Source: Macrostomum hystrix (lineage: Eukaryota > Animalia > Platyhelminthes). Taken from it: a DNA stretch of 64,000 nt. Of the stretch, positions 8,885-19,000 are shown in pieces (position 1 is the stretch's first letter; every line of letters starts with the position of its first letter). Below the pieces are notes generated by a model. It was given only the letters and a program-made list of their open reading frames with translations. It ran no database searches and had not been told where the DNA came from. The position numbers were made by a program, and so were the translations under genes. The stretch spans positions 18,414,001 through 18,478,000 of the forward strand of contig CATNEN010000039.1 of the NCBI GenBank assembly GCA_950097015.1. Reading direction: 5' to 3'.

Positions 8885-9392
8885 TCTACATCTCTCCCTC
8901 TCCATCTCTCCCTCTCCATCTCTCCCTCTCCATCTCTCCCTCTCCATCTCTCCCTCTCTATCTCTCCCTCTCCATCTCTCCCTCTCCATCTCTCCCTCTC
9001 CATCTCTCCCTCTCCATCTCTCCCTCTCCATCTCTCCCTCTCCATCTCTCCCTCTCCATCTCTCCCTCTCCATCTCTCCCTCTCCATCTCTCCCTCTCCA
9101 TCTCTCCCTCTCCATCTCTCCCTCTCCATCTCTCCCTCTCTATCTCTCCCTCTCCATCTCTCCCTCTCCATCTCTCCCTCTCTATCTCTCCCTCTCCATC
9201 TCTCCCTCTCCATCTCTCCCTCTCTATCTCTCCCTCTCCATCTCTCCCTCTCCATCTCTCCCTCTCTATCTCTCCCTCTCTATCTCTCCCTCTCCATCTC
9301 TCCCTCTCCATCTCTCCCTATCCATCTCTCCCTATCCATCTCTCCCTCTCCATCTCTCCCTCTCCATCTCTCCCTCTCAATCTCTCCCTCTC
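8885..9392. repeat. 14-bp pyrimidine-rich tandem repeat
   Basis: CTCCATCTCTCCCT units. Confidence 0.97.
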
Positions 9393-9900: not shown

Positions 9901-10244
9901 TATCTCCTCAGTCACTCCACTGTCTCCTCAGTCACTCCACTGTCTCCTCAGTCACTCCAGTGTCTCCTCAGTCACTCCACTGTCTCCTCAGTCACTCCAC
10001 TGTCTCCTCAGTCACTCCACTGTCTCCTCAGTCACTCCACTGTCTCCTCAGTCACTCCAGTGTCTCCTCAGTCACTCCACTGTCTCCTCAGTCACTCCAC
10101 TGTCTCCTCAGTCACTCCAGTGTCTCCTCAGTCACTCCACTGTCTCCTCAGTCACTCCACTGTCTCCTCAGTCACTCCAGTGTCTCCTCAGTCACTCCAC
10201 TGTCTCCTCAGTCACTCCACTGTCTCCTCAGTCACTCCACTGTC
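9901..10244. repeat. 20-bp minisatellite directly after the kinase stop codon
   Basis: About 17 copies of TGTCTCCTCAGTCACTCCAC. Confidence 0.97.
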
Positions 10245-13200
10245 ACTGCAGGAAGGGGTGTCGCAGCAGCTCTGCGGTCTCCGCCCTCCGCTTGGAATCC
10301 CTGGCCACGCAGCGGCGGTAGAAATCTCCCAGATTGTCGGAGGTCCCAGCCGGCAGCGGTGGCAGGTCTTGCTTTTGAATTCGCATTGGGATTTGCATCC
10401 ACGCTAGATTCCCATTCGGAGGCATCATCTGCAGCATCTCGAACACGGTGCAGCCGAACGCCCACACGTCGGTCTTGGGCGAGTACACGATTCGGCCGTC
10501 CTCGCTGTACAGCTCCGGAGCCATGAAGTAGCAGGTGCCGACGAGGTTCTTTGTGCTGCCAAGGGTCGAGTAGATTTCCTTTGCGAGGCCGAAGTCGATC
10601 AGCTTGATGACTCCCTCGTGGGTGAGCATGATGTTGTTGCACTTGATGTCCCTGTGTAGGGTCGGTGTGCTTCGACTGTGCAGGAAGTCGAGTGCCGAAC
10701 AGATCTGCAGGTGTAAAGTTACGCAGAGTGTAGAGTTAATGTGAGCAGCAACAGCCCAGCTTCACTGCCTCATCAGACTGCAACTCACCTGGAATGAGAA
10801 GTCCTTCACCGCTGACTCATTGAAAGGCTTCCGCTGTCGCTGCATCAGTTCAGCAAGGCTGTGTCCTGCGATCAGCTCAGTGAAGATGCACAGCTTTGAG
10901 TTGGATGCTCGCTCAGCCTTGAGAAACAGCACGATGTTCTGGTGTCGAAGGCTGCTCAGCACTGATATCTCCGACATCTGCTGCTGGACTGCGTCATCCA
11001 GAAGGCGAGCGTTGCATGCGGCCTCCAGCTTCACAATCTTGACCGCCACCGTCTGTCGTCTGTCGGTGAAGGCCTTGTACACCTTGCCGAAGCCACCTTC
11101 ACCCAGCAGCTGCTTCTTGCCCTCATCGTCGAGCAGGAAGTCCCAGCTGGCAAAGTCGGCGTCCAGGGACGGCCGGGCACTGGAAGGTCACGGAGGCTGT
11201 GAGTGAGGCGCATTGAGCAGTCCCTCTATCATCAGAGGGAGCATCACCTCTACCTGTGTTGACATGCCCGTGACATCCCTGAGCTGTGCTGACATCCCTA
11301 TAACATCCCTGAGCTGTGCTGACATGCCCATGAAATCCCTCAGCTGTGTTGACATGCCCGTGACATCCCTGAGCTGTGCTGACATCCCCATGACATCCCT
11401 GAGCTGTGCTGACATGCCCATGAAATCCCTCAGCTGTCCTGTAATCCCTTACTTATCCCACAGTGAGCAGTGCTCAGCAGTCAGTAGCCCATGAACTCAC
11501 GGTCGCGGCTGAGTCGTCTCGGGCCGCAGCTGCAAGCCGCCCATCGCCTGAGGCAGCCTCCGCAGCTCCTCATCGGGCGGCTGTGCTCGCTCCGACTGCC
11601 GCCGCAGCCGCTGCTCATCGATCCACTGCAGCAGCCGAGGTCCGTGCCGAGAGTTCAGCCGCGCGTAGTCGGCCAGCGTTTGTCCTTTGCCATCGAGCAG
11701 GTCGAAGGCGGAGTCACCCAGCGTGTCCCAGGTGAGGCGCAGTGAGTCCAGGTCCAGGTGCTGAGCTGCCAGGTGAGCAGGGGTGGCACCGGCTGAGTTT
11801 TTGGCAAGCAGGCAGGCGCGGCCGAGTTCTCTGACGAGCCACTGGAAGGCGGAGCTGCTGGATTCATTCATTGCCGCCATGTGAATCGCGGTGCGATCGA
11901 CTTGTCCTTTCTGGTGGAAGCAGTCTGGACCGAGAAGCGACTTGATGAGCTGCATGGAGTCGGAGCCCTGCTTCCACGCGGCCAGATGGACTGGTGTGTT
12001 GCCTTCTTTGTCTCTCACGGTGAGGCACTCTGGCCCGCAAACCTCCACCAGATACTTGAGGGCGGAGTTGCTGGATTCATTCATTGCCGCCCAGTGAATC
12101 GCGGTGCGATCGAATTGTCCTTTCTGGTGGAAGCAGTCTGGACCGAGAAGCGACTTGATGAGCTGCATGGAGTCGTGGCCCTGCTTCCACGCGGCCAGAT
12201 GGACTGGTGTGTCGCCTAGTCCGTCTCTCACGGTGAGGCACTCTGGCCCGCAAACCTCCACCAGATACTTGAGGGCGGAGTTGCTGGATTCATTCATTGC
12301 CGCCATGTGAATCGCGGTGCGATCGGATCGTCCTTTCTGGTGGAAGCAGTCTGGACCGAGAAGCGACTTGATGAGCTGCATGGAGTCGGAGCCCTGCTTC
12401 CACGCGGCAATATGGACTGGTGTGTTGCCTTCTTTGTCTCTCACGGTGAGGCACTCTGGCCCGCAAACCTCCACCAGATACTTGAGGGCGGAGTTGCTGG
12501 ATGAGTTCTCTGCCGCATTGTGAATCGCGGTTTGATCGAATTGTCCTTTCTGGTGGAAGCAGTCTGGACCGAGAAGCGACTTGATGAGCTGCATGGAGTC
12601 GGAGCCCTGCTTCCACGCGGCCAGATGGATTGGTGTGTTGCCTTGTCCGTCTCTCACTGTGAGGCACTCTGGCCCGCAAACCTCCACCAGATACTTGAGG
12701 GCGGAGTTGCTGGATTCATTCATTGCCGCCCAGTGAATCGCGGTGCGATCGGATCGTCCTTTCTGGTGGAAGCAGTCTGGACCGAGAAGCGACTTGATGA
12801 GCTGCATGGAGTCGGAGCCCTGCTTCCACGCGGCAATATGGACTGGTGTGTTGCCTTCTTTGTCTCTCACGGTGAGGCACTCTGGCCCGCAAACCTCCAC
12901 CAGATACTTGAGGGCGGAGTTGCTGGATGAGTTCTCTGCCGCATTGTGAATCGCGGTTTGATCGAATTGTCCTTTCTGGTGGAAGCAGTCTGGACCGAGA
13001 AGCGACTTGATGAGCTGCATGGAGTCGGAGCCCTGCTTCCACGCGGCCAGATGGATTGGTGTGTTGCCTTGTCCGTCTCTCACTGTGAGGCACTCTGGCC
13101 CGCAAACCTCCACCAGATACTTGAGGGCGGAGTTGCTGGATTCATTCATTGCCGCATGGTGAATCACGGTGCGATCGACTTGTCCTTTCTGGTGGAAGCA

Positions 13201-13725
13201 GTCTGGACCGAGAAGCGACTTGATGAGCTGCATGGAGTCGGAGCCCTGCTTCCACGCGGCCAGATGGACTGGTGTGTTGCCTTTTCCGTCTCTCACTGTG
13301 AGGCACTCTGGCCCGCAAACCTCCACCAGATACTTGAGGGCGGAGTTGCTGGATTCATTCTCTGCCGCCATGTGAATCGCGGTTTGATCGTAATTTCCTT
13401 TCTGGTGGAAGTGGTCGTTGCTGTCCACAGCTCGACGAACGGCCTGCAGCCATGCTCGATCCCGAAACAATGCGGCCAGGTGTACAGTAGTGTTGCCATA
13501 GGAGTTGGTTTCCTCGAGGAAGCCAGGTCCTAGTCGAATAATCAGGGCTTCGAAGCAGCGGAGACCGTCGGGCAACCTCTGGGCGACGTGGTGAGCCAGT
13601 GACTGCTTAAAGCCGAAGGCAGTGAAGCTGGGGTTTGAGTCCACCTGCCGGCACAGACGCAGCAGGCGGTCCGCATCGCGCGCTTCGAGAGCGGCTGCGA
13701 GCTCGGAAGAGGTGGGCGGCGGCAT
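10243..13725 (-). CDS. Ankyrin-repeat array fused to C-terminal STE/MAP3K-like Ser/Thr kinase (about 1025 aa, 3 exons)
   Basis: Exons 13725-11501, 11179-10789, 10704-10243 (phases 2 and 0 join in frame). ANK motifs TPVHLAA/TAIHxAA; kinase motifs GEGGFGKVY, VAVK, EISVL, HRDIKCNN, DFG, GTCYFMAPE, DVWAFG all intact. Confidence 0.92.
11255..11440. repeat. 30-bp tandem repeat in intron 1 of the ANK-kinase gene
   Basis: About 6 copies of CTGTGCTGACATGCCCATGAAATCCCTGAG-like unit. Confidence 0.93.
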
Positions 13726-13809
13726 GGCGTTTGGAGCTGGATTCGGCTGCGGCTGCGAGTTCTGGCGAAGTGGCGTCGGCGTGCAAGTTGAATAGTGTAG
13801 CCTCAGCTG

Positions 13810-13818: not shown

Positions 13819-14139
13819 TGTGCGAGTGGTGGGGTGGGCGTCAAAGCAGGCTTAAAAAGCAGCAGTTCTGAAGGCCTCACTACTGGCAGTAGTACTGCAG
13901 GCCTTTCAACCGCATTTTTGTAATTTGTTAGAGATGGGCTAAAGCTCGTTTAAGGACAGGAAAACAGTTTCCCGATTTTCTTCGTCAGCTCAGGTTTACA
14001 CTTAATTGATTACTTCTTCTTGACTATTTATTACTGATTACCTTACATCCCCCAGAAGACATGAACTTCTTAAAATTGTGTACAACTTTCTTAAATTAGG
14101 TTTAGTTAGATCTGTCAGATAGGTTTTGCGTTTAGGTTT

Positions 14140-15765
14140 ACCGTTTAGGTTTACCGTTTAGGTTTACCGTTTAGGTTTACCGTTTAGGTTTACCGTTTAG
14201 GTTTACCGTTTAGGTTTACCGTTTAGGTTTACCGTTTAGGTTAACCGTTTAGGTTTACCGTTAAGTTTACCGTTAAGTTTACCGTTAAGTTTACCGTTTA
14301 GGTTTACCGTTTAGGTTTACCGTTTAGGTTTACCGTTTAGGTTTACTGTTTAGGTTTACCGTTTAGGTTTACCATTTAGGTTTACCGTTTAGGTTTACCG
14401 TTTAGGTTAACCGTTTAGGTTAACCGTTTAGGTTTACCGTTTAGGTTTACCGTTTAGGTTTACCGTTTAGGTTTACCATTTAGGTTTACCGTTGAGGTTT
14501 ACCGTTTAGATTTACCGTTTAGGTTTACCGTTTAGGTTTACCGTTAAGTTTACCGTTTAGGTTTACCGTTTAGGTTTACCGTTTAGGTTTACCGTTTAGG
14601 TTTACCGTTTAGGTTTACCGTTTAGGTTTACCGTTTAGGTTTACCGTTTAGGTTTACCGTTTAGGTTTACCGTTTAGGTTTACCGTTTAGGTTTACCGTT
14701 TAGGTTTACCGTTTAGGTTTACCATTTAGGTTTACCGTTTAGGTTTACCGTTTAGGTTTACCGTTTAGGTTTACCGTTTAGGTTTACCGTTTAGGTTTAC
14801 CGTTTAGGTTTACCGTTTAGGTTTACCGTTTAGGTTTACCGTTTAGGTTTACCGTTTAGGTTTACCGTTTAGGTTTACCGTTTAGGTTTACCGTTTAGGT
14901 TTACCGTTTAGGTTTACCGTTTAGGTTTACCGTTTAGGTTTACCGTTTAGGTTTACCGTTTAGGTTTACCGTTTAGGTTTACCGTTTAGGTTTACCGTTT
15001 AGGTTTACCGTTTAGGTTTACCGTTTAGGTTTACCGTTTAGGTTTACCGTTTAGGTTTACCGTTTAGGTTTACCGTTTAGGTTTACCGTTTAGGTTTACC
15101 GTTTAGGTTTACCGTTTAGGTTTACCGTTTAGGTTTACCGTTGAGGTTTACCATTTAGGTTTACCGTTGAGGTTTACCGTTTAGATTTACCGTTTAGGTT
15201 TACCGTTTAGGTTTACCGTTAAGTTTACCGTTTAGGTTTACCGTTTAGGTTTACCGTTAAGTTTACCGTTAAGTTTACCGTTAAGTTTACCGTTTAGGTT
15301 TACCGTTCAGGTTTACCGTTTAGGTTTACCGTTTAGGTTTACCGTTTAGGTTTACCGTTTAGGTTTACCGTTTAGGTTTACCGTTTAGGTTAACCGTTTA
15401 GGTTTACCGTTTAGGTTTACCGTTTAGGTTTACCGTTTAGGTTTACCGTTGAGGTTTACCATTTAGGTTTACCGTTGAGGTTTACCGTTTAGATTTACCG
15501 TTTAGGTTTACCGTTTAGGTTTACCGTTAAGTTTACCGTTTAGGTTTACCGTTTAGGTTTACCGTTAAGTTTACCGTTAAGTTTACCGTTAAGTTTACCG
15601 TTTAGGTTTACCGTTTAGGTTTACCGTTTAGGTTTACCGTTTAGGTTTACCGTTTAGGTTTACCGTTTAGGTTTACCGTTTAGGTTTACCGTTTAGGTTT
15701 ACCGTTTAGGTTTACCGTTTAGGTTTACCGTTTAGGTTTACCGTTTAGGTTTACAGTTAAGTTTA
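14140..15765. repeat. 13-bp tandem satellite between divergent genes
   Basis: About 120 copies of TTTAGGTTTACCG. Confidence 0.98.
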
Positions 15766-16080
15766 CCTGCCTACTTACCACTGACAATAGCTAATGAGCA
15801 CAGGTATTCTAGCAGCATTTTCTGTGCAAATAACTAAACGATTTACAGTTGCCAGTAATACTACTAGTAGTAGTTCTATTCTTCAGTTAAAAATCGAATC
15901 CTTTATTGGAACAGCCGGAAATGAGAAATCGCGTTGCGGTCAAGCACAGTCGACTATGAAAGGCCCCCATTGGCTGTGAGACTGTCAGATATTATATTTA
16001 TTGTGTACCTGGCACTCTACCTGGCTGCTGGAAGTTGCGAGTCACTGATCAGGCGAGCTGCCACAGTTCATCAGCCAGCC

Positions 16081-19000
16081 ATGCACGACGAGCTCTACGA
16101 ATCGGACTTGGCGAATTTCCTGCCGCCACCGCCGCCGGAGTTCGCCGACAATTCGACATTCCAGCCGCCGATGCCGGACAATGCGGTGGACAGGAAGTTC
16201 CTGGACGAGTACTTCTGCGATATGACTCGAAATGAAGCTCTTGAAGCTCTGGAGGCTGTGCAGATGGTAACTCTGGGTGCTCAGAGCCTTTGAGAACTGT
16301 CTCGCTTTTTGTAAAACAAAAAGAGGCATTAAAAGTAGCTAGAATCGCAGCAAAGAATCATAGCTGGAATCGCAGCAGAGAATCGTAGCTAGAATCGCAG
16401 CAGAGAATCATAGCTGGAATCGCAGCAGAGAATCGTAGCTAGAATCGCAGCAGAGAATCGTAGCTAGAATCGCAGCAGAGAATCGCAGCTAGAATCGCAG
16501 CAAAGAATCGTAGCTAGAATCGCAGCAGAGAATCATAGCTGGAATCGCAGCAGAGAATCGTAGCTAGAATCGCAGCAGAGAATCGCAGCTAGAATCGCAG
16601 CAAAGAATCGTAGCTAGAATCGCAGCAAAGAATCGTAACTAGAATCGCAGCAGAGAATCGTAGCTAGAATCGCAGCAGAGAATCGTAGCTAGAATCGCAG
16701 CAGAGAATCGCAGCAAAGAATCGTAACTAGAATCGCAGCAAGATTCGCAGCTAGAATCGCAGCAGAGAATCGCAGCAAAGAATCGTAACTTGAATCGCAG
16801 CAAAGAATCGTAACTAGAATCGTAGCTAGAATCGCAGCTAGAATCGCAGCAAAGAATCGCAACAAAGAATCGTAACTAGAATCGCAGCAAGATTCGCAGC
16901 TAGAATCGCAGCAAAGAATCGTAACTAGAATCGCAGCTAGAATCGCAGCAGATAAGCTAGAATCGCAGCTAGAAACGCAGCAGAAAAGCTAGAATCGCAG
17001 CAGATAAGCTATAATCGCAGCAGAAAAGCTAGAATTGCAGCAGATAAGCTAGAACCGCAGCTAGAAACGCAGCAGATAAGCTATAATCGCAGCAGAAAAG
17101 CTAGAATCGCAGCAGATAAGCTAGAATCGCAGCAGATAAGCTGGAATCGCAGCAGATAAGCTAGAATCGCAGGTAGAAACGCAGTAGATAAGCTATAATC
17201 GCAGCAGAAAAGCTAGAATCGCAGCAGATAATCTAGAATCGCAGCAAAGGCCGCAGCGAAGTCTTTTGTATTCTCGTACTAATTCGAATATCACAAAAAC
17301 CACAGGACGGGGCGTACATAGTTCGGCCGGGCACCGCCAGTCCTTATTGCATCTCATTCCTTCACGGCGGCGAGACGAAGCACGTGAAAATCAAGTGCAG
17401 CAGCAACGGAAAATACTTTCTGGGCGACACCAAGGTGGAAATGGTAGGCAACTAAACAGGAAAGAATTTGGCTGCTACAGTGTCTGCATTCATTTAAAGT
17501 ACATTCATTGCTAGAATCGCAGCAGGAGCTATAGCTAGAATCGCAGCAGGAGCTATGGCTGGAATCGCAGCAGGAGCTATAGCTAGAATCGCAGCAAGAG
17601 CTATGGCTGGAATCGCAGCAAGAGCTATGGCTAGAATCGCAGCAGGAGCTATGGCTGGAATCGCAGCAGGAGCTATAGCTAGAATCGCAGCAAGAGCTAT
17701 GGCTGGAATCGCAGCAAGAGCTATGGCTAGAATCGCAGCAGGAGCTATGGCTAGAATCGCAGCAGGAGCCATTTCTAGAATCGCAGCAAGAGCTATGGCT
17801 AGAATCGCAGCAAGAGCTATGGCTAGAATCGCAGCAAGAGCTATGGCTAGAATCGCAGCATGAGCTATAGCTAGAATCGCAGCAGAAGCCATTTCTAGAA
17901 TCGCAGCAAGAACTATAGCTAGAATCGCAGCAAGAGCTATGGCTCGAATCGCAGCAGGAGCTATTTCTAGAATCGCAGCAAGAATTATAGCTAGAATCGC
18001 AGCAAGAACTATAGCTAGAATCATAGCAAGAGCTATGGCTAGAATCGCACCAGGAGCCATTTCTAGAATCGCAGCAAGAACTATAGCTAGAATCGCAGCA
18101 AGAACATTAGCTAGAATCGCAGCAAGAGTTATAGCTAGAATCGCAGCAAGAACTATAGCTAGAATCGCAGCAAGAACTACAGCTAGAATCGCAGCAAGAA
18201 CTATAGCTAGAATCGCAGCAAGAACTATAGCTAGAATCGCAGCAAGAACTACAGCTAGAATCGCAGCAAGAACTACAGCTAGAATCGCAGCAAGAACTAT
18301 AGCTAGAATCGCAGCAAGAACTATAGCTAGAATCGCAGCAAGAGCTATGGCTGGAATCGCAGCAAGAGCTATGGCTGGAATCGCAGCAGGAGCCATTTCT
18401 AGAATCGCAGCAAGAGCTATGGCTAGAATCGCAGCAAGAGCTATGGCTGGAATCGCAGCAGGAGCCATTTCTAGAATCGCAGCAAGAGCTATGGCTAGAA
18501 TCGCAGCAAGAGCTGTTGCTAGAATCGCAGCAAGACCTTGCAGCTAGAGTTTTATTTAACGCATAATTTTGAATAATATAGTAAAATAATAAACTATTTG
18601 TCATATGTTTTCTATTTTTATACTTATATTTCAACGATAGTCTCGCAATGAACAATTTGACAGCTGTTTGACACAATGTCTCAACTAATGGACTACTTGA
18701 CTAAGAATGTGATTCAAGGCGTCAACGGTGTTGTATTCCGACTGATCATCAACGCAAAGTCCTACTCCCAGAGGTACGTATGTCTTGGCTTCTCTTGGAT
18801 TGCATGTGACATTGTGCAGGCATAGATATGTTACTTGGAATCCGTATGAATTGTGTAGCAGCTGAAATTCGCTCAGGCCTGGCACCCAGAGCATCTGCTT
18901 CGCATTGTTTATGATTAACAACTAGATATTTCAGTCCAGCTGAGGTGTATTTAGCAAGCATCCGCCTGATGCGGTGTTGCTAGCAGAGTTCTGCTTTGAA

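Follow-up and report, generated by a model that had tools for sequence, protein, structure and literature searches.

A homogenised ankyrin array with variable putative binding residues, joined to a kinase in Macrostomum hystrix

How might an animal protein keep one repeat framework almost unchanged and at the same time vary the residues with which that framework would bind its partners? The question is raised by a gene on the minus strand of a 64,000-nucleotide stretch of the genome of the flatworm Macrostomum hystrix (assembly GCA_950097015.1, contig CATNEN010000039.1, positions 18,414,001 to 18,478,000), the whole of which we call the window. The predicted protein of 1025 residues comprises about 18 ankyrin repeats (an N-terminal cap, 7.3 repeat units and a C-terminal cap), a linker of about 60 residues and a C-terminal Ser/Thr kinase. 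A preliminary description, made from the letters of the window, had proposed that the ankyrin array resembles a natural version of designed ankyrin repeat proteins (DARPins), with an invariant scaffold and variable binding positions, and that it serves as a diversifying non-self sensor wired to the kinase. Our analysis leads us to lean towards a fast-evolving recognition array whose groove diversity would be kept by selection and whose ligand binding would control the kinase.

Homogenised framework and variable codons

Tandem Repeats Finder detected a single array at 11841-13411 with a period of 213, 7.4 copies, 92% matches and zero indels. The roughly 7.5 near-identical tandem units of 213 bp that had been proposed correspond to seven full units and the start of an eighth, all within a single exon according to RNA contigs. 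The seven 71-residue units share a mean identity of 93.9% in DNA and 89.9% in protein (range 84.5-100%), units 3 and 5 being identical; this mean lies above the 85% identity, over a length of 100 residues or more, by which the highly internally conserved repeats of fungi are defined. The sequence preceding unit 1 is dissimilar at a lag of 213 nt, such that the homogenised tract is sharp-edged. All 27 variable bases are confined to 15 of the 71 codons, a clustering that none of 100,000 random placements attained (p < 1e-5), while the other 56 codons, with about 38 silent sites, are unchanged across the seven copies. Thirteen of the 15 variable codons replace a residue and two are purely silent, namely T38 (ACA/ACC) and N18 (AAT/AAC, adjoining a GAA/TCA change); the preliminary description had counted essentially one silent variant, ACC/ACA. 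Further silent steps are possible within CAA/CGC and CTG/ATT.

The residue strings quoted in that description for successive units all proved correct: NYDQ/QVDR/QFDQ/RSDR/QFDQ/RSDR/QFDR/QVDR at the first turn, M/H/N/W/N/M/W/M (codons ATG/CAT/AAT/TGG) after the IH motif, E or M after AA, and GK/GQ/KE/GQ/KE/GL/KE at the second turn. The groove codons often differ between units by two or three bases and present up to four residues per position. Conservative changes were also found at unit positions 11, 48, 50 and 57. The four-gamete test was failed by 22 of 105 site pairs, some of them merely 7-16 nt apart, which indicates that short-tract exchange or recurrent change has acted on the sequence of the array.

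We then asked where the variable residues sit in the ankyrin fold. When the exons were searched one by one, the ankyrin exon matched the Pfam families Ank_2 (PF12796, E 6.3e-71) and Ank (PF00023, E 6.3e-51), and both halves of the unit could be aligned with canonical NOMPC and ankyrin repeats. For residues 36-390, the AlphaFold model is a continuous solenoid with paired helices throughout (predicted local distance difference test, pLDDT, 96; predicted template modelling score, pTM, 0.91). The top Foldseek matches of this model were all ankyrin solenoids, the nearest solved ones being structures with partner segments (Espin1-AR/Myo3b and AnkB with an autoinhibition segment). In the canonical numbering D1-x-x-G-x-T-P-L-H-x-A-A-x-x-G, unit positions 6, 7, 9, 14 and 17 in the first repeat of the unit correspond to 2, 3, 5, 10 and 13, and unit positions 42, 43, 45, 50, 53 and 54 in the second repeat to 2, 3, 5, 10, 13 and 14. 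In the model, the mapped positions occupy helix 1 and the loop that leads into it.

The variable positions are enriched in the set randomised in DARPins, which we take to be 2, 3, 5, 13, 14 and 33 (p 6.6e-4 here and 2e-4 in the related species Macrostomum lignano). In those proteins, six positions per repeat are randomised on the concave face (PMC3602593). Nine of the 13 replacement codons lie at canonical positions 2, 3, 5, 10 and 13, in the beta-turn and the inner helix. These positions, together with 33, were chosen for the ANK-N5C library as the most variable in natural repeats, and crystal structures of ANK-N5C proteins showed them to form one continuous binding surface of beta-turn and helix 1 (PMC4308713). 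The proposal of an invariant scaffold with variable positions of the DARPin type is therefore borne out by both published library sets.

To assess selection, we compared replacement (dN) and silent (dS) change. Over the whole unit, pairwise Nei-Gojobori estimates of the proportions of replacement and silent differences were pN 0.069 and pS 0.035 (ratio 1.94), and a minimum-event count gave 28 replacement and 3 silent events (omega, the ratio dN/dS, 2.64; binomial p 0.066). As the main test, the whole-unit ratio was set aside as suggestive only. At the ANK-N5C positions, 22 replacement events fell on 30.7 replacement sites, whereas the 41.7 silent sites in the remainder of the unit had 2 silent events; the ratio of 14.9 (Fisher p 1.5e-9) comes from a small sample of seven units, which are not independent lineages. 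The same contrast with the DARPin set yielded a ratio of 14.0 (p 6e-6). Outside the ANK-N5C set, the replacement rate (0.044 per site) equalled the silent rate (0.048 per site). The excess of replacement over silent change expected from the preliminary description thus holds for the groove positions, while the whole unit falls short of significance.

Because homogenisation copies contiguous tracts, and because variable and invariant codons are interleaved at 3-20 nt, neutral sites are expected to be equally low in diversity throughout the unit. The 15-fold excess therefore requires either selection keeping the groove residues different or a mutation process aimed at those codons. No base-specific mutation signature was seen at the variable codons. 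Hypermutation of the type produced by diversity-generating retroelements was dropped as a leading idea, since the variable codons, as read from the sequence, lack an adenine-specific pattern. Taken together, the data point strongly to a binding groove diversified on a homogenised scaffold.

The spliced transcript and its kinase

An unbroken open reading frame of 742 codons (minus strand, 11497-13725) encloses the array. RNA-like contigs from three runs, two of which (X2 and X5) represent two studies of one organism and the third (X9) a related organism, revealed the spliced joints 11501|11179 and 10789|10704, both GT..AG on the minus strand. A single 1046-nt RNA contig runs from the kinase C-lobe across both joints into the ankyrin exon. 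The gene is thus expressed, with ankyrin array and kinase within one spliced transcript, and the fusion to a kinase that had been claimed is confirmed by RNA that joins the ankyrin exon to two kinase exons. No upstream splice joint was found in the RNA contigs of the X5, X9 and X2 records, which end at 13731-13774, and the ATG at 13725 is therefore the likely translation start. Neither a signal peptide nor a membrane segment was evident in the protein on inspection by eye. The features of the gene and the minisatellites of the locus are listed in Table 1.

Table 1. Features of the ankyrin-kinase gene and minisatellites of the locus, in positions of the window.
Feature	Position	Strand	Details
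Whole coding region, ankyrin-kinase gene	10243..13725	-	3 exons, 2225+391+462 = 3078 nt = 1025 codons + stop; from open reading frame, RNA joints and in-frame translations
5' untranslated region	13726..13774	-	RNA contig ends at 13731-13774
Exon 1: start codon, N-terminal cap, ankyrin array, C-terminal cap, linker	11501..13725	-	ends CC|GTGAGT, phase 2
N-terminal region and capping ankyrin repeat, residues 1-105, non-homogenised	13411..13725	-	from register alignment and AlphaFold
Seven full homogenised 213-bp units (71 residues, two ankyrins each)	11920..13410	-	first bases 13410, 13197, 12984, 12771, 12558, 12345, 12132
Unit 8	11707..11919	-	first ~63 nt homogenised (to about 11857), remainder diverged into C-terminal cap
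Intron 1, 321 nt, GT..AG	11180..11500	-	RNA joint; carries 30-bp minisatellite at 11254-11441
Exon 2: linker and kinase N-lobe (GEGGFGKV glycine loop, VAVK lysine)	10789..11179	-	RNA joints, Pfam
Intron 2, 84 nt, GT..AG	10705..10788	-	RNA joint
Exon 3: kinase C-lobe (HRDIKCNN, DFG, APE), stop codon	10243..10704	-	stop codon 10243-10245; transcript reaches at least 10215
Minisatellite, 14 bp x 28	9000-9392		
Minisatellite, 20 bp x 17	9903-10244		extends into 3' untranslated region
Minisatellite, 30 bp x 6.3	11254-11441		intron 1
Minisatellite, 13 bp x 128	14120-15767		
Minisatellite, 25 bp x 25	16335-16952		

The Pkinase family (PF00069) was matched by exon 2 (E 1.3e-11) and by exon 3 (E 8.7e-22), and the motifs GEGGFGKV, VAVK, HRDIKCNN, DFG and APE are intact. 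With all catalytic motifs present, the kinase is predicted to be active and of the STE/MEKK-like kind. The best solved matches of the C-lobe were the PAK4, SLK and MST kinases of the STE20 group (E 2e-21), and those of the N-lobe were TNNI3K, SLK, MST4 and ASK1 (E about 1e-7 to 1e-6), with TNNI3K in first place (E 2.7e-7). Outside Macrostomum, a database search with the kinase portion of the nearest M. lignano protein retrieved plant MAPKKK1-type proteins with 35-38% identity and then bacterial kinases. The earlier label "MAP3K-like" (for mitogen-activated protein kinase kinase kinase) is fair as a statement of similarity rather than of membership of a named MAP3K family.

Two side observations concern the locus itself. 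Minisatellites found by Tandem Repeats Finder flank the gene and one lies inside it, and the locus looks prone to the formation of tandem repeats. Over 235 nt of the N-terminal region (13536-13770), the related organism of run X9 showed 10 base differences from the window and a deletion of 3 bases. Its kinase exons showed 2 base differences in 471 nt and 2 in the 565-nt contig that also extends over the last part of exon 1; the kinase may be evolving more slowly than the N-terminal cap region.

Related arrays in Macrostomum

The close relatives of the ankyrin exon were all M. lignano proteins, with generic ankyrin proteins next in score, which agrees with the invertebrate host supposed earlier, here a Macrostomum-type flatworm. 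One of them, P0002 (1026 residues, partial), has the same layout with about eight units and shares 64% identity with the ankyrin exon and 71% with the kinase C-lobe. The nearest paralogs in the M. hystrix genome reach 64-65% over the C-lobe, and P0002 is therefore the likely M. lignano counterpart of the window gene.

All comparisons with M. lignano were made at the protein level. The units of that species (from P0002 and the caspases P0001, P0003 and P0008) vary at positions 2, 6, 7, 8, 9, 14, 17, 19, 20, 43, 45, 53, 54, 56 and 70, and the window units at 6, 7, 9, 11, 14, 17, 19, 42, 43, 45, 48, 50 and 57. Eight variable positions are common to the two species (hypergeometric p 4.6e-4), and the per-position entropies are correlated (Spearman 0.55). 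Fifty-one positions are invariant in the arrays of both species, 13 of which carry fixed differences between them. A framework that is identical within an array, silent sites included, yet differs between species indicates concerted evolution by unequal crossing-over or gene conversion. Between the species, the hypervariable positions are 35% identical versus 75% for the framework, and groove patterns do not match between units of equal rank; by these comparisons the groove residues have been completely turned over between the two species. The lack of groove correspondence speaks against the idea that each repeat keeps conserved contacts to one fixed ligand, and that idea was rejected.

The unit also sits on another effector: P0001, P0003, P0007 and P0008 of M. 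lignano combine it with a caspase domain (PF00656) in one chain. The kinase P0002 and the caspases P0001, P0003 and P0008 share one identical unit framework, with some whole units identical. Of the opening regions with the N-terminal cap, those of P0002 and P0003 alone overlap; an estimate by eye, not a computation, puts their likeness at roughly 70%.

In the M. hystrix genome, at least 7 loci have an ankyrin unit adjoining a kinase of this type, and M. lignano has more than 35 ankyrin-kinase proteins. The closest paralog array in the M. hystrix genome is about 70% identical in DNA. One ankyrin-kinase paralog (L051, C1:22825569-22828952) contains three 72-residue units of 90-95% DNA identity that vary again at the turns and the inner helix, with a whole-unit omega of 1.09. 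The units of most other paralog arrays have diverged. A further locus, C41:2470680-2473780 (L006-L010, L042, L044), holds a 1033-codon frame with about 13 units of the 71-residue type and 77% mean identity, among which three consecutive copies are nearly identical, with one base of difference. This suggests that part of an old array has recently expanded, and no effector domain was found within 1.1 kb downstream. Judged by their sequences, the arrays of the family span all states of homogenisation. The C41 array was considered as an independent test of selection and rejected, as it shows relaxation, which is no proof of positive selection, and its silent sites are near saturation.

None of 81 caspase matches in this genome adjoined a listed ankyrin-unit array, only the best candidates having been scored. 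For the Mab-21 family (PF03281), the genome gave one match, at a distance from the arrays of this unit. Kinase and caspase matches lie side by side on the same strand at C24:2966892-2968937, C38:8.738-8.784 Mb and C1:23.930-23.933 Mb. These neighbours fit an M. lignano caspase with a kinase-like pro-domain that has been reported (PMC11463336), and they suggest a whole family of such genes. Ankyrin matches at C10:6-9 kb and 266-270 kb have the same scores as those at C41:654-658 kb and 406-410 kb and follow one another in the opposite order, as might result from a segmental duplication or from a haplotype left uncollapsed.

Possible function and comparison with known systems

The reading towards which we lean starts from selection that keeps the groove residues diverse and so would yield a fast-evolving recognition surface, one that unit shuffling would alter further. 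Binding of a ligand in the groove would then control the kinase, either by bringing kinase domains together for trans-activation or by releasing an autoinhibition. In the simplest model, a multivalent or oligomeric ligand would cluster the protein; the alternative is the release of an intramolecular block. Clustering is the simplest model because proximity activates initiator caspases as well as kinases of this broad type, ASK1 among them. The occurrence of the same array on M. lignano caspases suggests that it is a plug-on sensor module, which could be attached to different effectors as a NOD-less counterpart of the conserved-repeat receptors of fungi. Our leading guess for the ligand is foreign proteins, be they from a pathogen, a symbiont or a mobile element, and it is reasonable to regard the array as a candidate non-self sensor. 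Tentatively, one may go further and picture a germline repertoire of NOD-less intracellular receptors in Macrostomum, in which a homogenised ankyrin cassette with a diverse groove, reshuffled within and between loci, is mounted on kinases and caspases, and in which binding of foreign proteins leads to signalling or cell death by induced proximity; we consider this wider picture possible, though not probable.

Several points weigh against a selected recognition array that controls the kinase. The dN/dS of the whole unit is 1.9 (pairwise) to 2.6 (event count) at p 0.066, and the within-unit contrast assumes that the silent sites of the framework give the neutral rate of the whole unit. In the C41:2.47 Mb paralog, the older units have a dN/dS of 0.40 at the binding positions and 0.19 elsewhere. 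The variable residues were placed in the groove by alignment to the canonical repeat, and positions 2, 3, 5, 10 and 13 are the least constrained in ankyrin repeats generally (PMC4308713). The number and order of the units are those of the assembly; in short-read contigs the array is collapsed. Finally, the Pfam scan of the three exons found ankyrin-type and kinase domains only, with no NOD or other oligomerisation domain, which makes the activation step conjecture.

Alternatively, the array might recognise the worm's own fast-evolving or numerous partners, such as substrates of the kinase or caspase family or reproductive, developmental or regeneration signals, and act as a recruiting adaptor with no immune role. 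This would suit a protein that looks intracellular and in whose three exons the Pfam scan found no immune domain. It would also suit a family that is large and genus-specific, as for a lineage-specific expansion of signalling proteins, and many natural ankyrin-kinase proteins are scaffolds, TNNI3K being the best N-lobe match. However, the groove residues are not conserved between species at units of the same rank, and the same array occurs on caspases; both points are more in keeping with a sensor driven by conflict than with a stable housekeeping adaptor, while co-evolving self partners are still compatible with them. We rate this alternative as doubtful, albeit one to be taken seriously.

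A neutral origin was weighed next to the recognition array: in a locus prone to duplication and homogenisation, the framework would seem frozen owing to the youth of its copies, and changes might simply gather at structurally free positions. The locus is indeed rich in minisatellites, units 3 and 5 are identical, the variable positions are those least constrained in ankyrin repeats (PMC4308713), and dN/dS is not significantly above 1 over the whole unit and lies below 1 in older paralogous units. Relaxed constraint, however, cannot lift replacement above the silent rate, and the observed excess is about 15-fold (p 1.5e-9). Moreover, two or three bases separate the codons, up to four residues occur at one position, and hypervariability recurs at these positions in a paralog and in an independent species. 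A neutral by-product is therefore unlikely.

As to whether the copy number is real, exactly 1278 nt (6 x 213) are passed over both in X1, a short-read DNA contig, and in X9, an RNA contig of the related organism; since 31-mer graphs collapse near-identical repeats, these skips are uninformative on copy number. Within the array, X9 differed solely at unit position 42-43, where AAA GAA was read as GGA CAA, another natural variant. Pieces of RNA contigs at least 99% alike to variant segments of the array numbered 28 of 33 in X2 and 21 of 25 in X5. An assembly error in which a shorter or polymorphic repeat was expanded or put in the wrong order, as the six units omitted by both contigs might suggest, is very improbable given that such skips are expected from the graphs, that RNA of two studies matches the variant segments, that the frame is intact across 742 codons, that in M. 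lignano the counterpart is laid out alike with about eight units, and that an assembly of 42 contigs for 220 Mb suggests long reads.

We compared the putative recognition array with four kinds of known proteins. Fungal NLR-type receptors with conserved ankyrin (ANK), tetratricopeptide (TPR) or WD repeats carry hypervariable, positively selected sites on the concave face, in the inner helix and beta-hairpin, and their repeat number varies between isolates; in metazoans, such highly internally conserved repeats are rare (0.8% of repeats; PMC4986451). Like these receptors (Podospora HET-E/HET-D/HNWD; Dyrka et al. 2014, PMC4986451), the window array has repeats more than 85% identical within one protein, hypervariable sites assigned to the concave face, signs of exchange between repeats and possibly between loci, and modular effector domains. 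Unlike them, the window gene is without NACHT or NB-ARC and joins its array directly to the effector; the array is N-terminal rather than C-terminal, the host is an animal, and the homogenised unit is a repeat pair of 71 residues. The window gene is therefore outside the fungal NLR family: of the analogy drawn in the preliminary description, the mode of evolution fits, and the NOD domain is missing in the Pfam scan.

With designed ankyrin libraries (DARPins; ANK-N5C, PMC4308713), the array shares a fixed framework and diversity at positions 2, 3, 5, 10, 13 and 14. Unlike these libraries, it is natural and germline-encoded with few variants per position, and the two repeats of its unit have different frameworks and extra short helices in the AlphaFold model; the analogy is one of design, not descent.

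The ANK caspases published for Platyhelminthes (Lee et al. 2014, referenced by PMC11463336, 'Evolution of Apoptotic Signaling Pathways Within Lophotrochozoans') resemble the window protein in having an ankyrin pro-domain directly joined to an enzyme of death or signalling, and the M. lignano versions carry this very unit; unlike them, the window gene carries a kinase. PMC11463336 calls these caspases unique to parasitic flatworms and does not mention homogenised or hypervariable repeats. As a side observation, P0001, P0003, P0007 and P0008 of M. lignano are ankyrin-caspases of a free-living flatworm, in contrast to that statement.

The animal ankyrin-kinases TNNI3K, ILK, DAPK1 and ANKK1/RIPK4 likewise have both domains in one chain, TNNI3K in the same order of ankyrin array and then kinase. 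The similarity of the window protein to them is weak. To our knowledge, none of them has near-identical repeats with hypervariable groove residues.

Concerted evolution of protein repeats is rare in metazoans and has been linked, as a suggestion, with conflict between hosts and parasites (PMC5100051). Our literature searches returned no description of such ankyrin-kinase genes or arrays in Macrostomum. What is known, then, is the design, from fungal immune receptors; what is new is its presence on an animal kinase, undescribed in the literature searched. The mode of homogenised repeats with hypervariable residues, so far worked out mainly in fungal NLR-type receptors, is now encountered in an animal, on a predicted intracellular protein that lacks a NOD domain and is wired to a kinase, and in the sister species M. 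lignano to caspases.

The diversity of recognition in animals without antibodies has few known answers, among them the variable lymphocyte receptors of lampreys, the fibrinogen-related proteins (FREPs) of snails, Dscam and the sea-urchin 185/333 proteins. M. lignano is amenable to RNA interference and transgenesis, such that a hunt for ligands, the swapping of arrays and infection tests would be feasible, and the natural variants could serve protein engineering as ready-made ankyrin binding surfaces. If the favoured reading of a selected recognition array is true, these genes would be an animal counterpart of the conserved-repeat receptors of fungi and a new route to recognition diversity in invertebrates.

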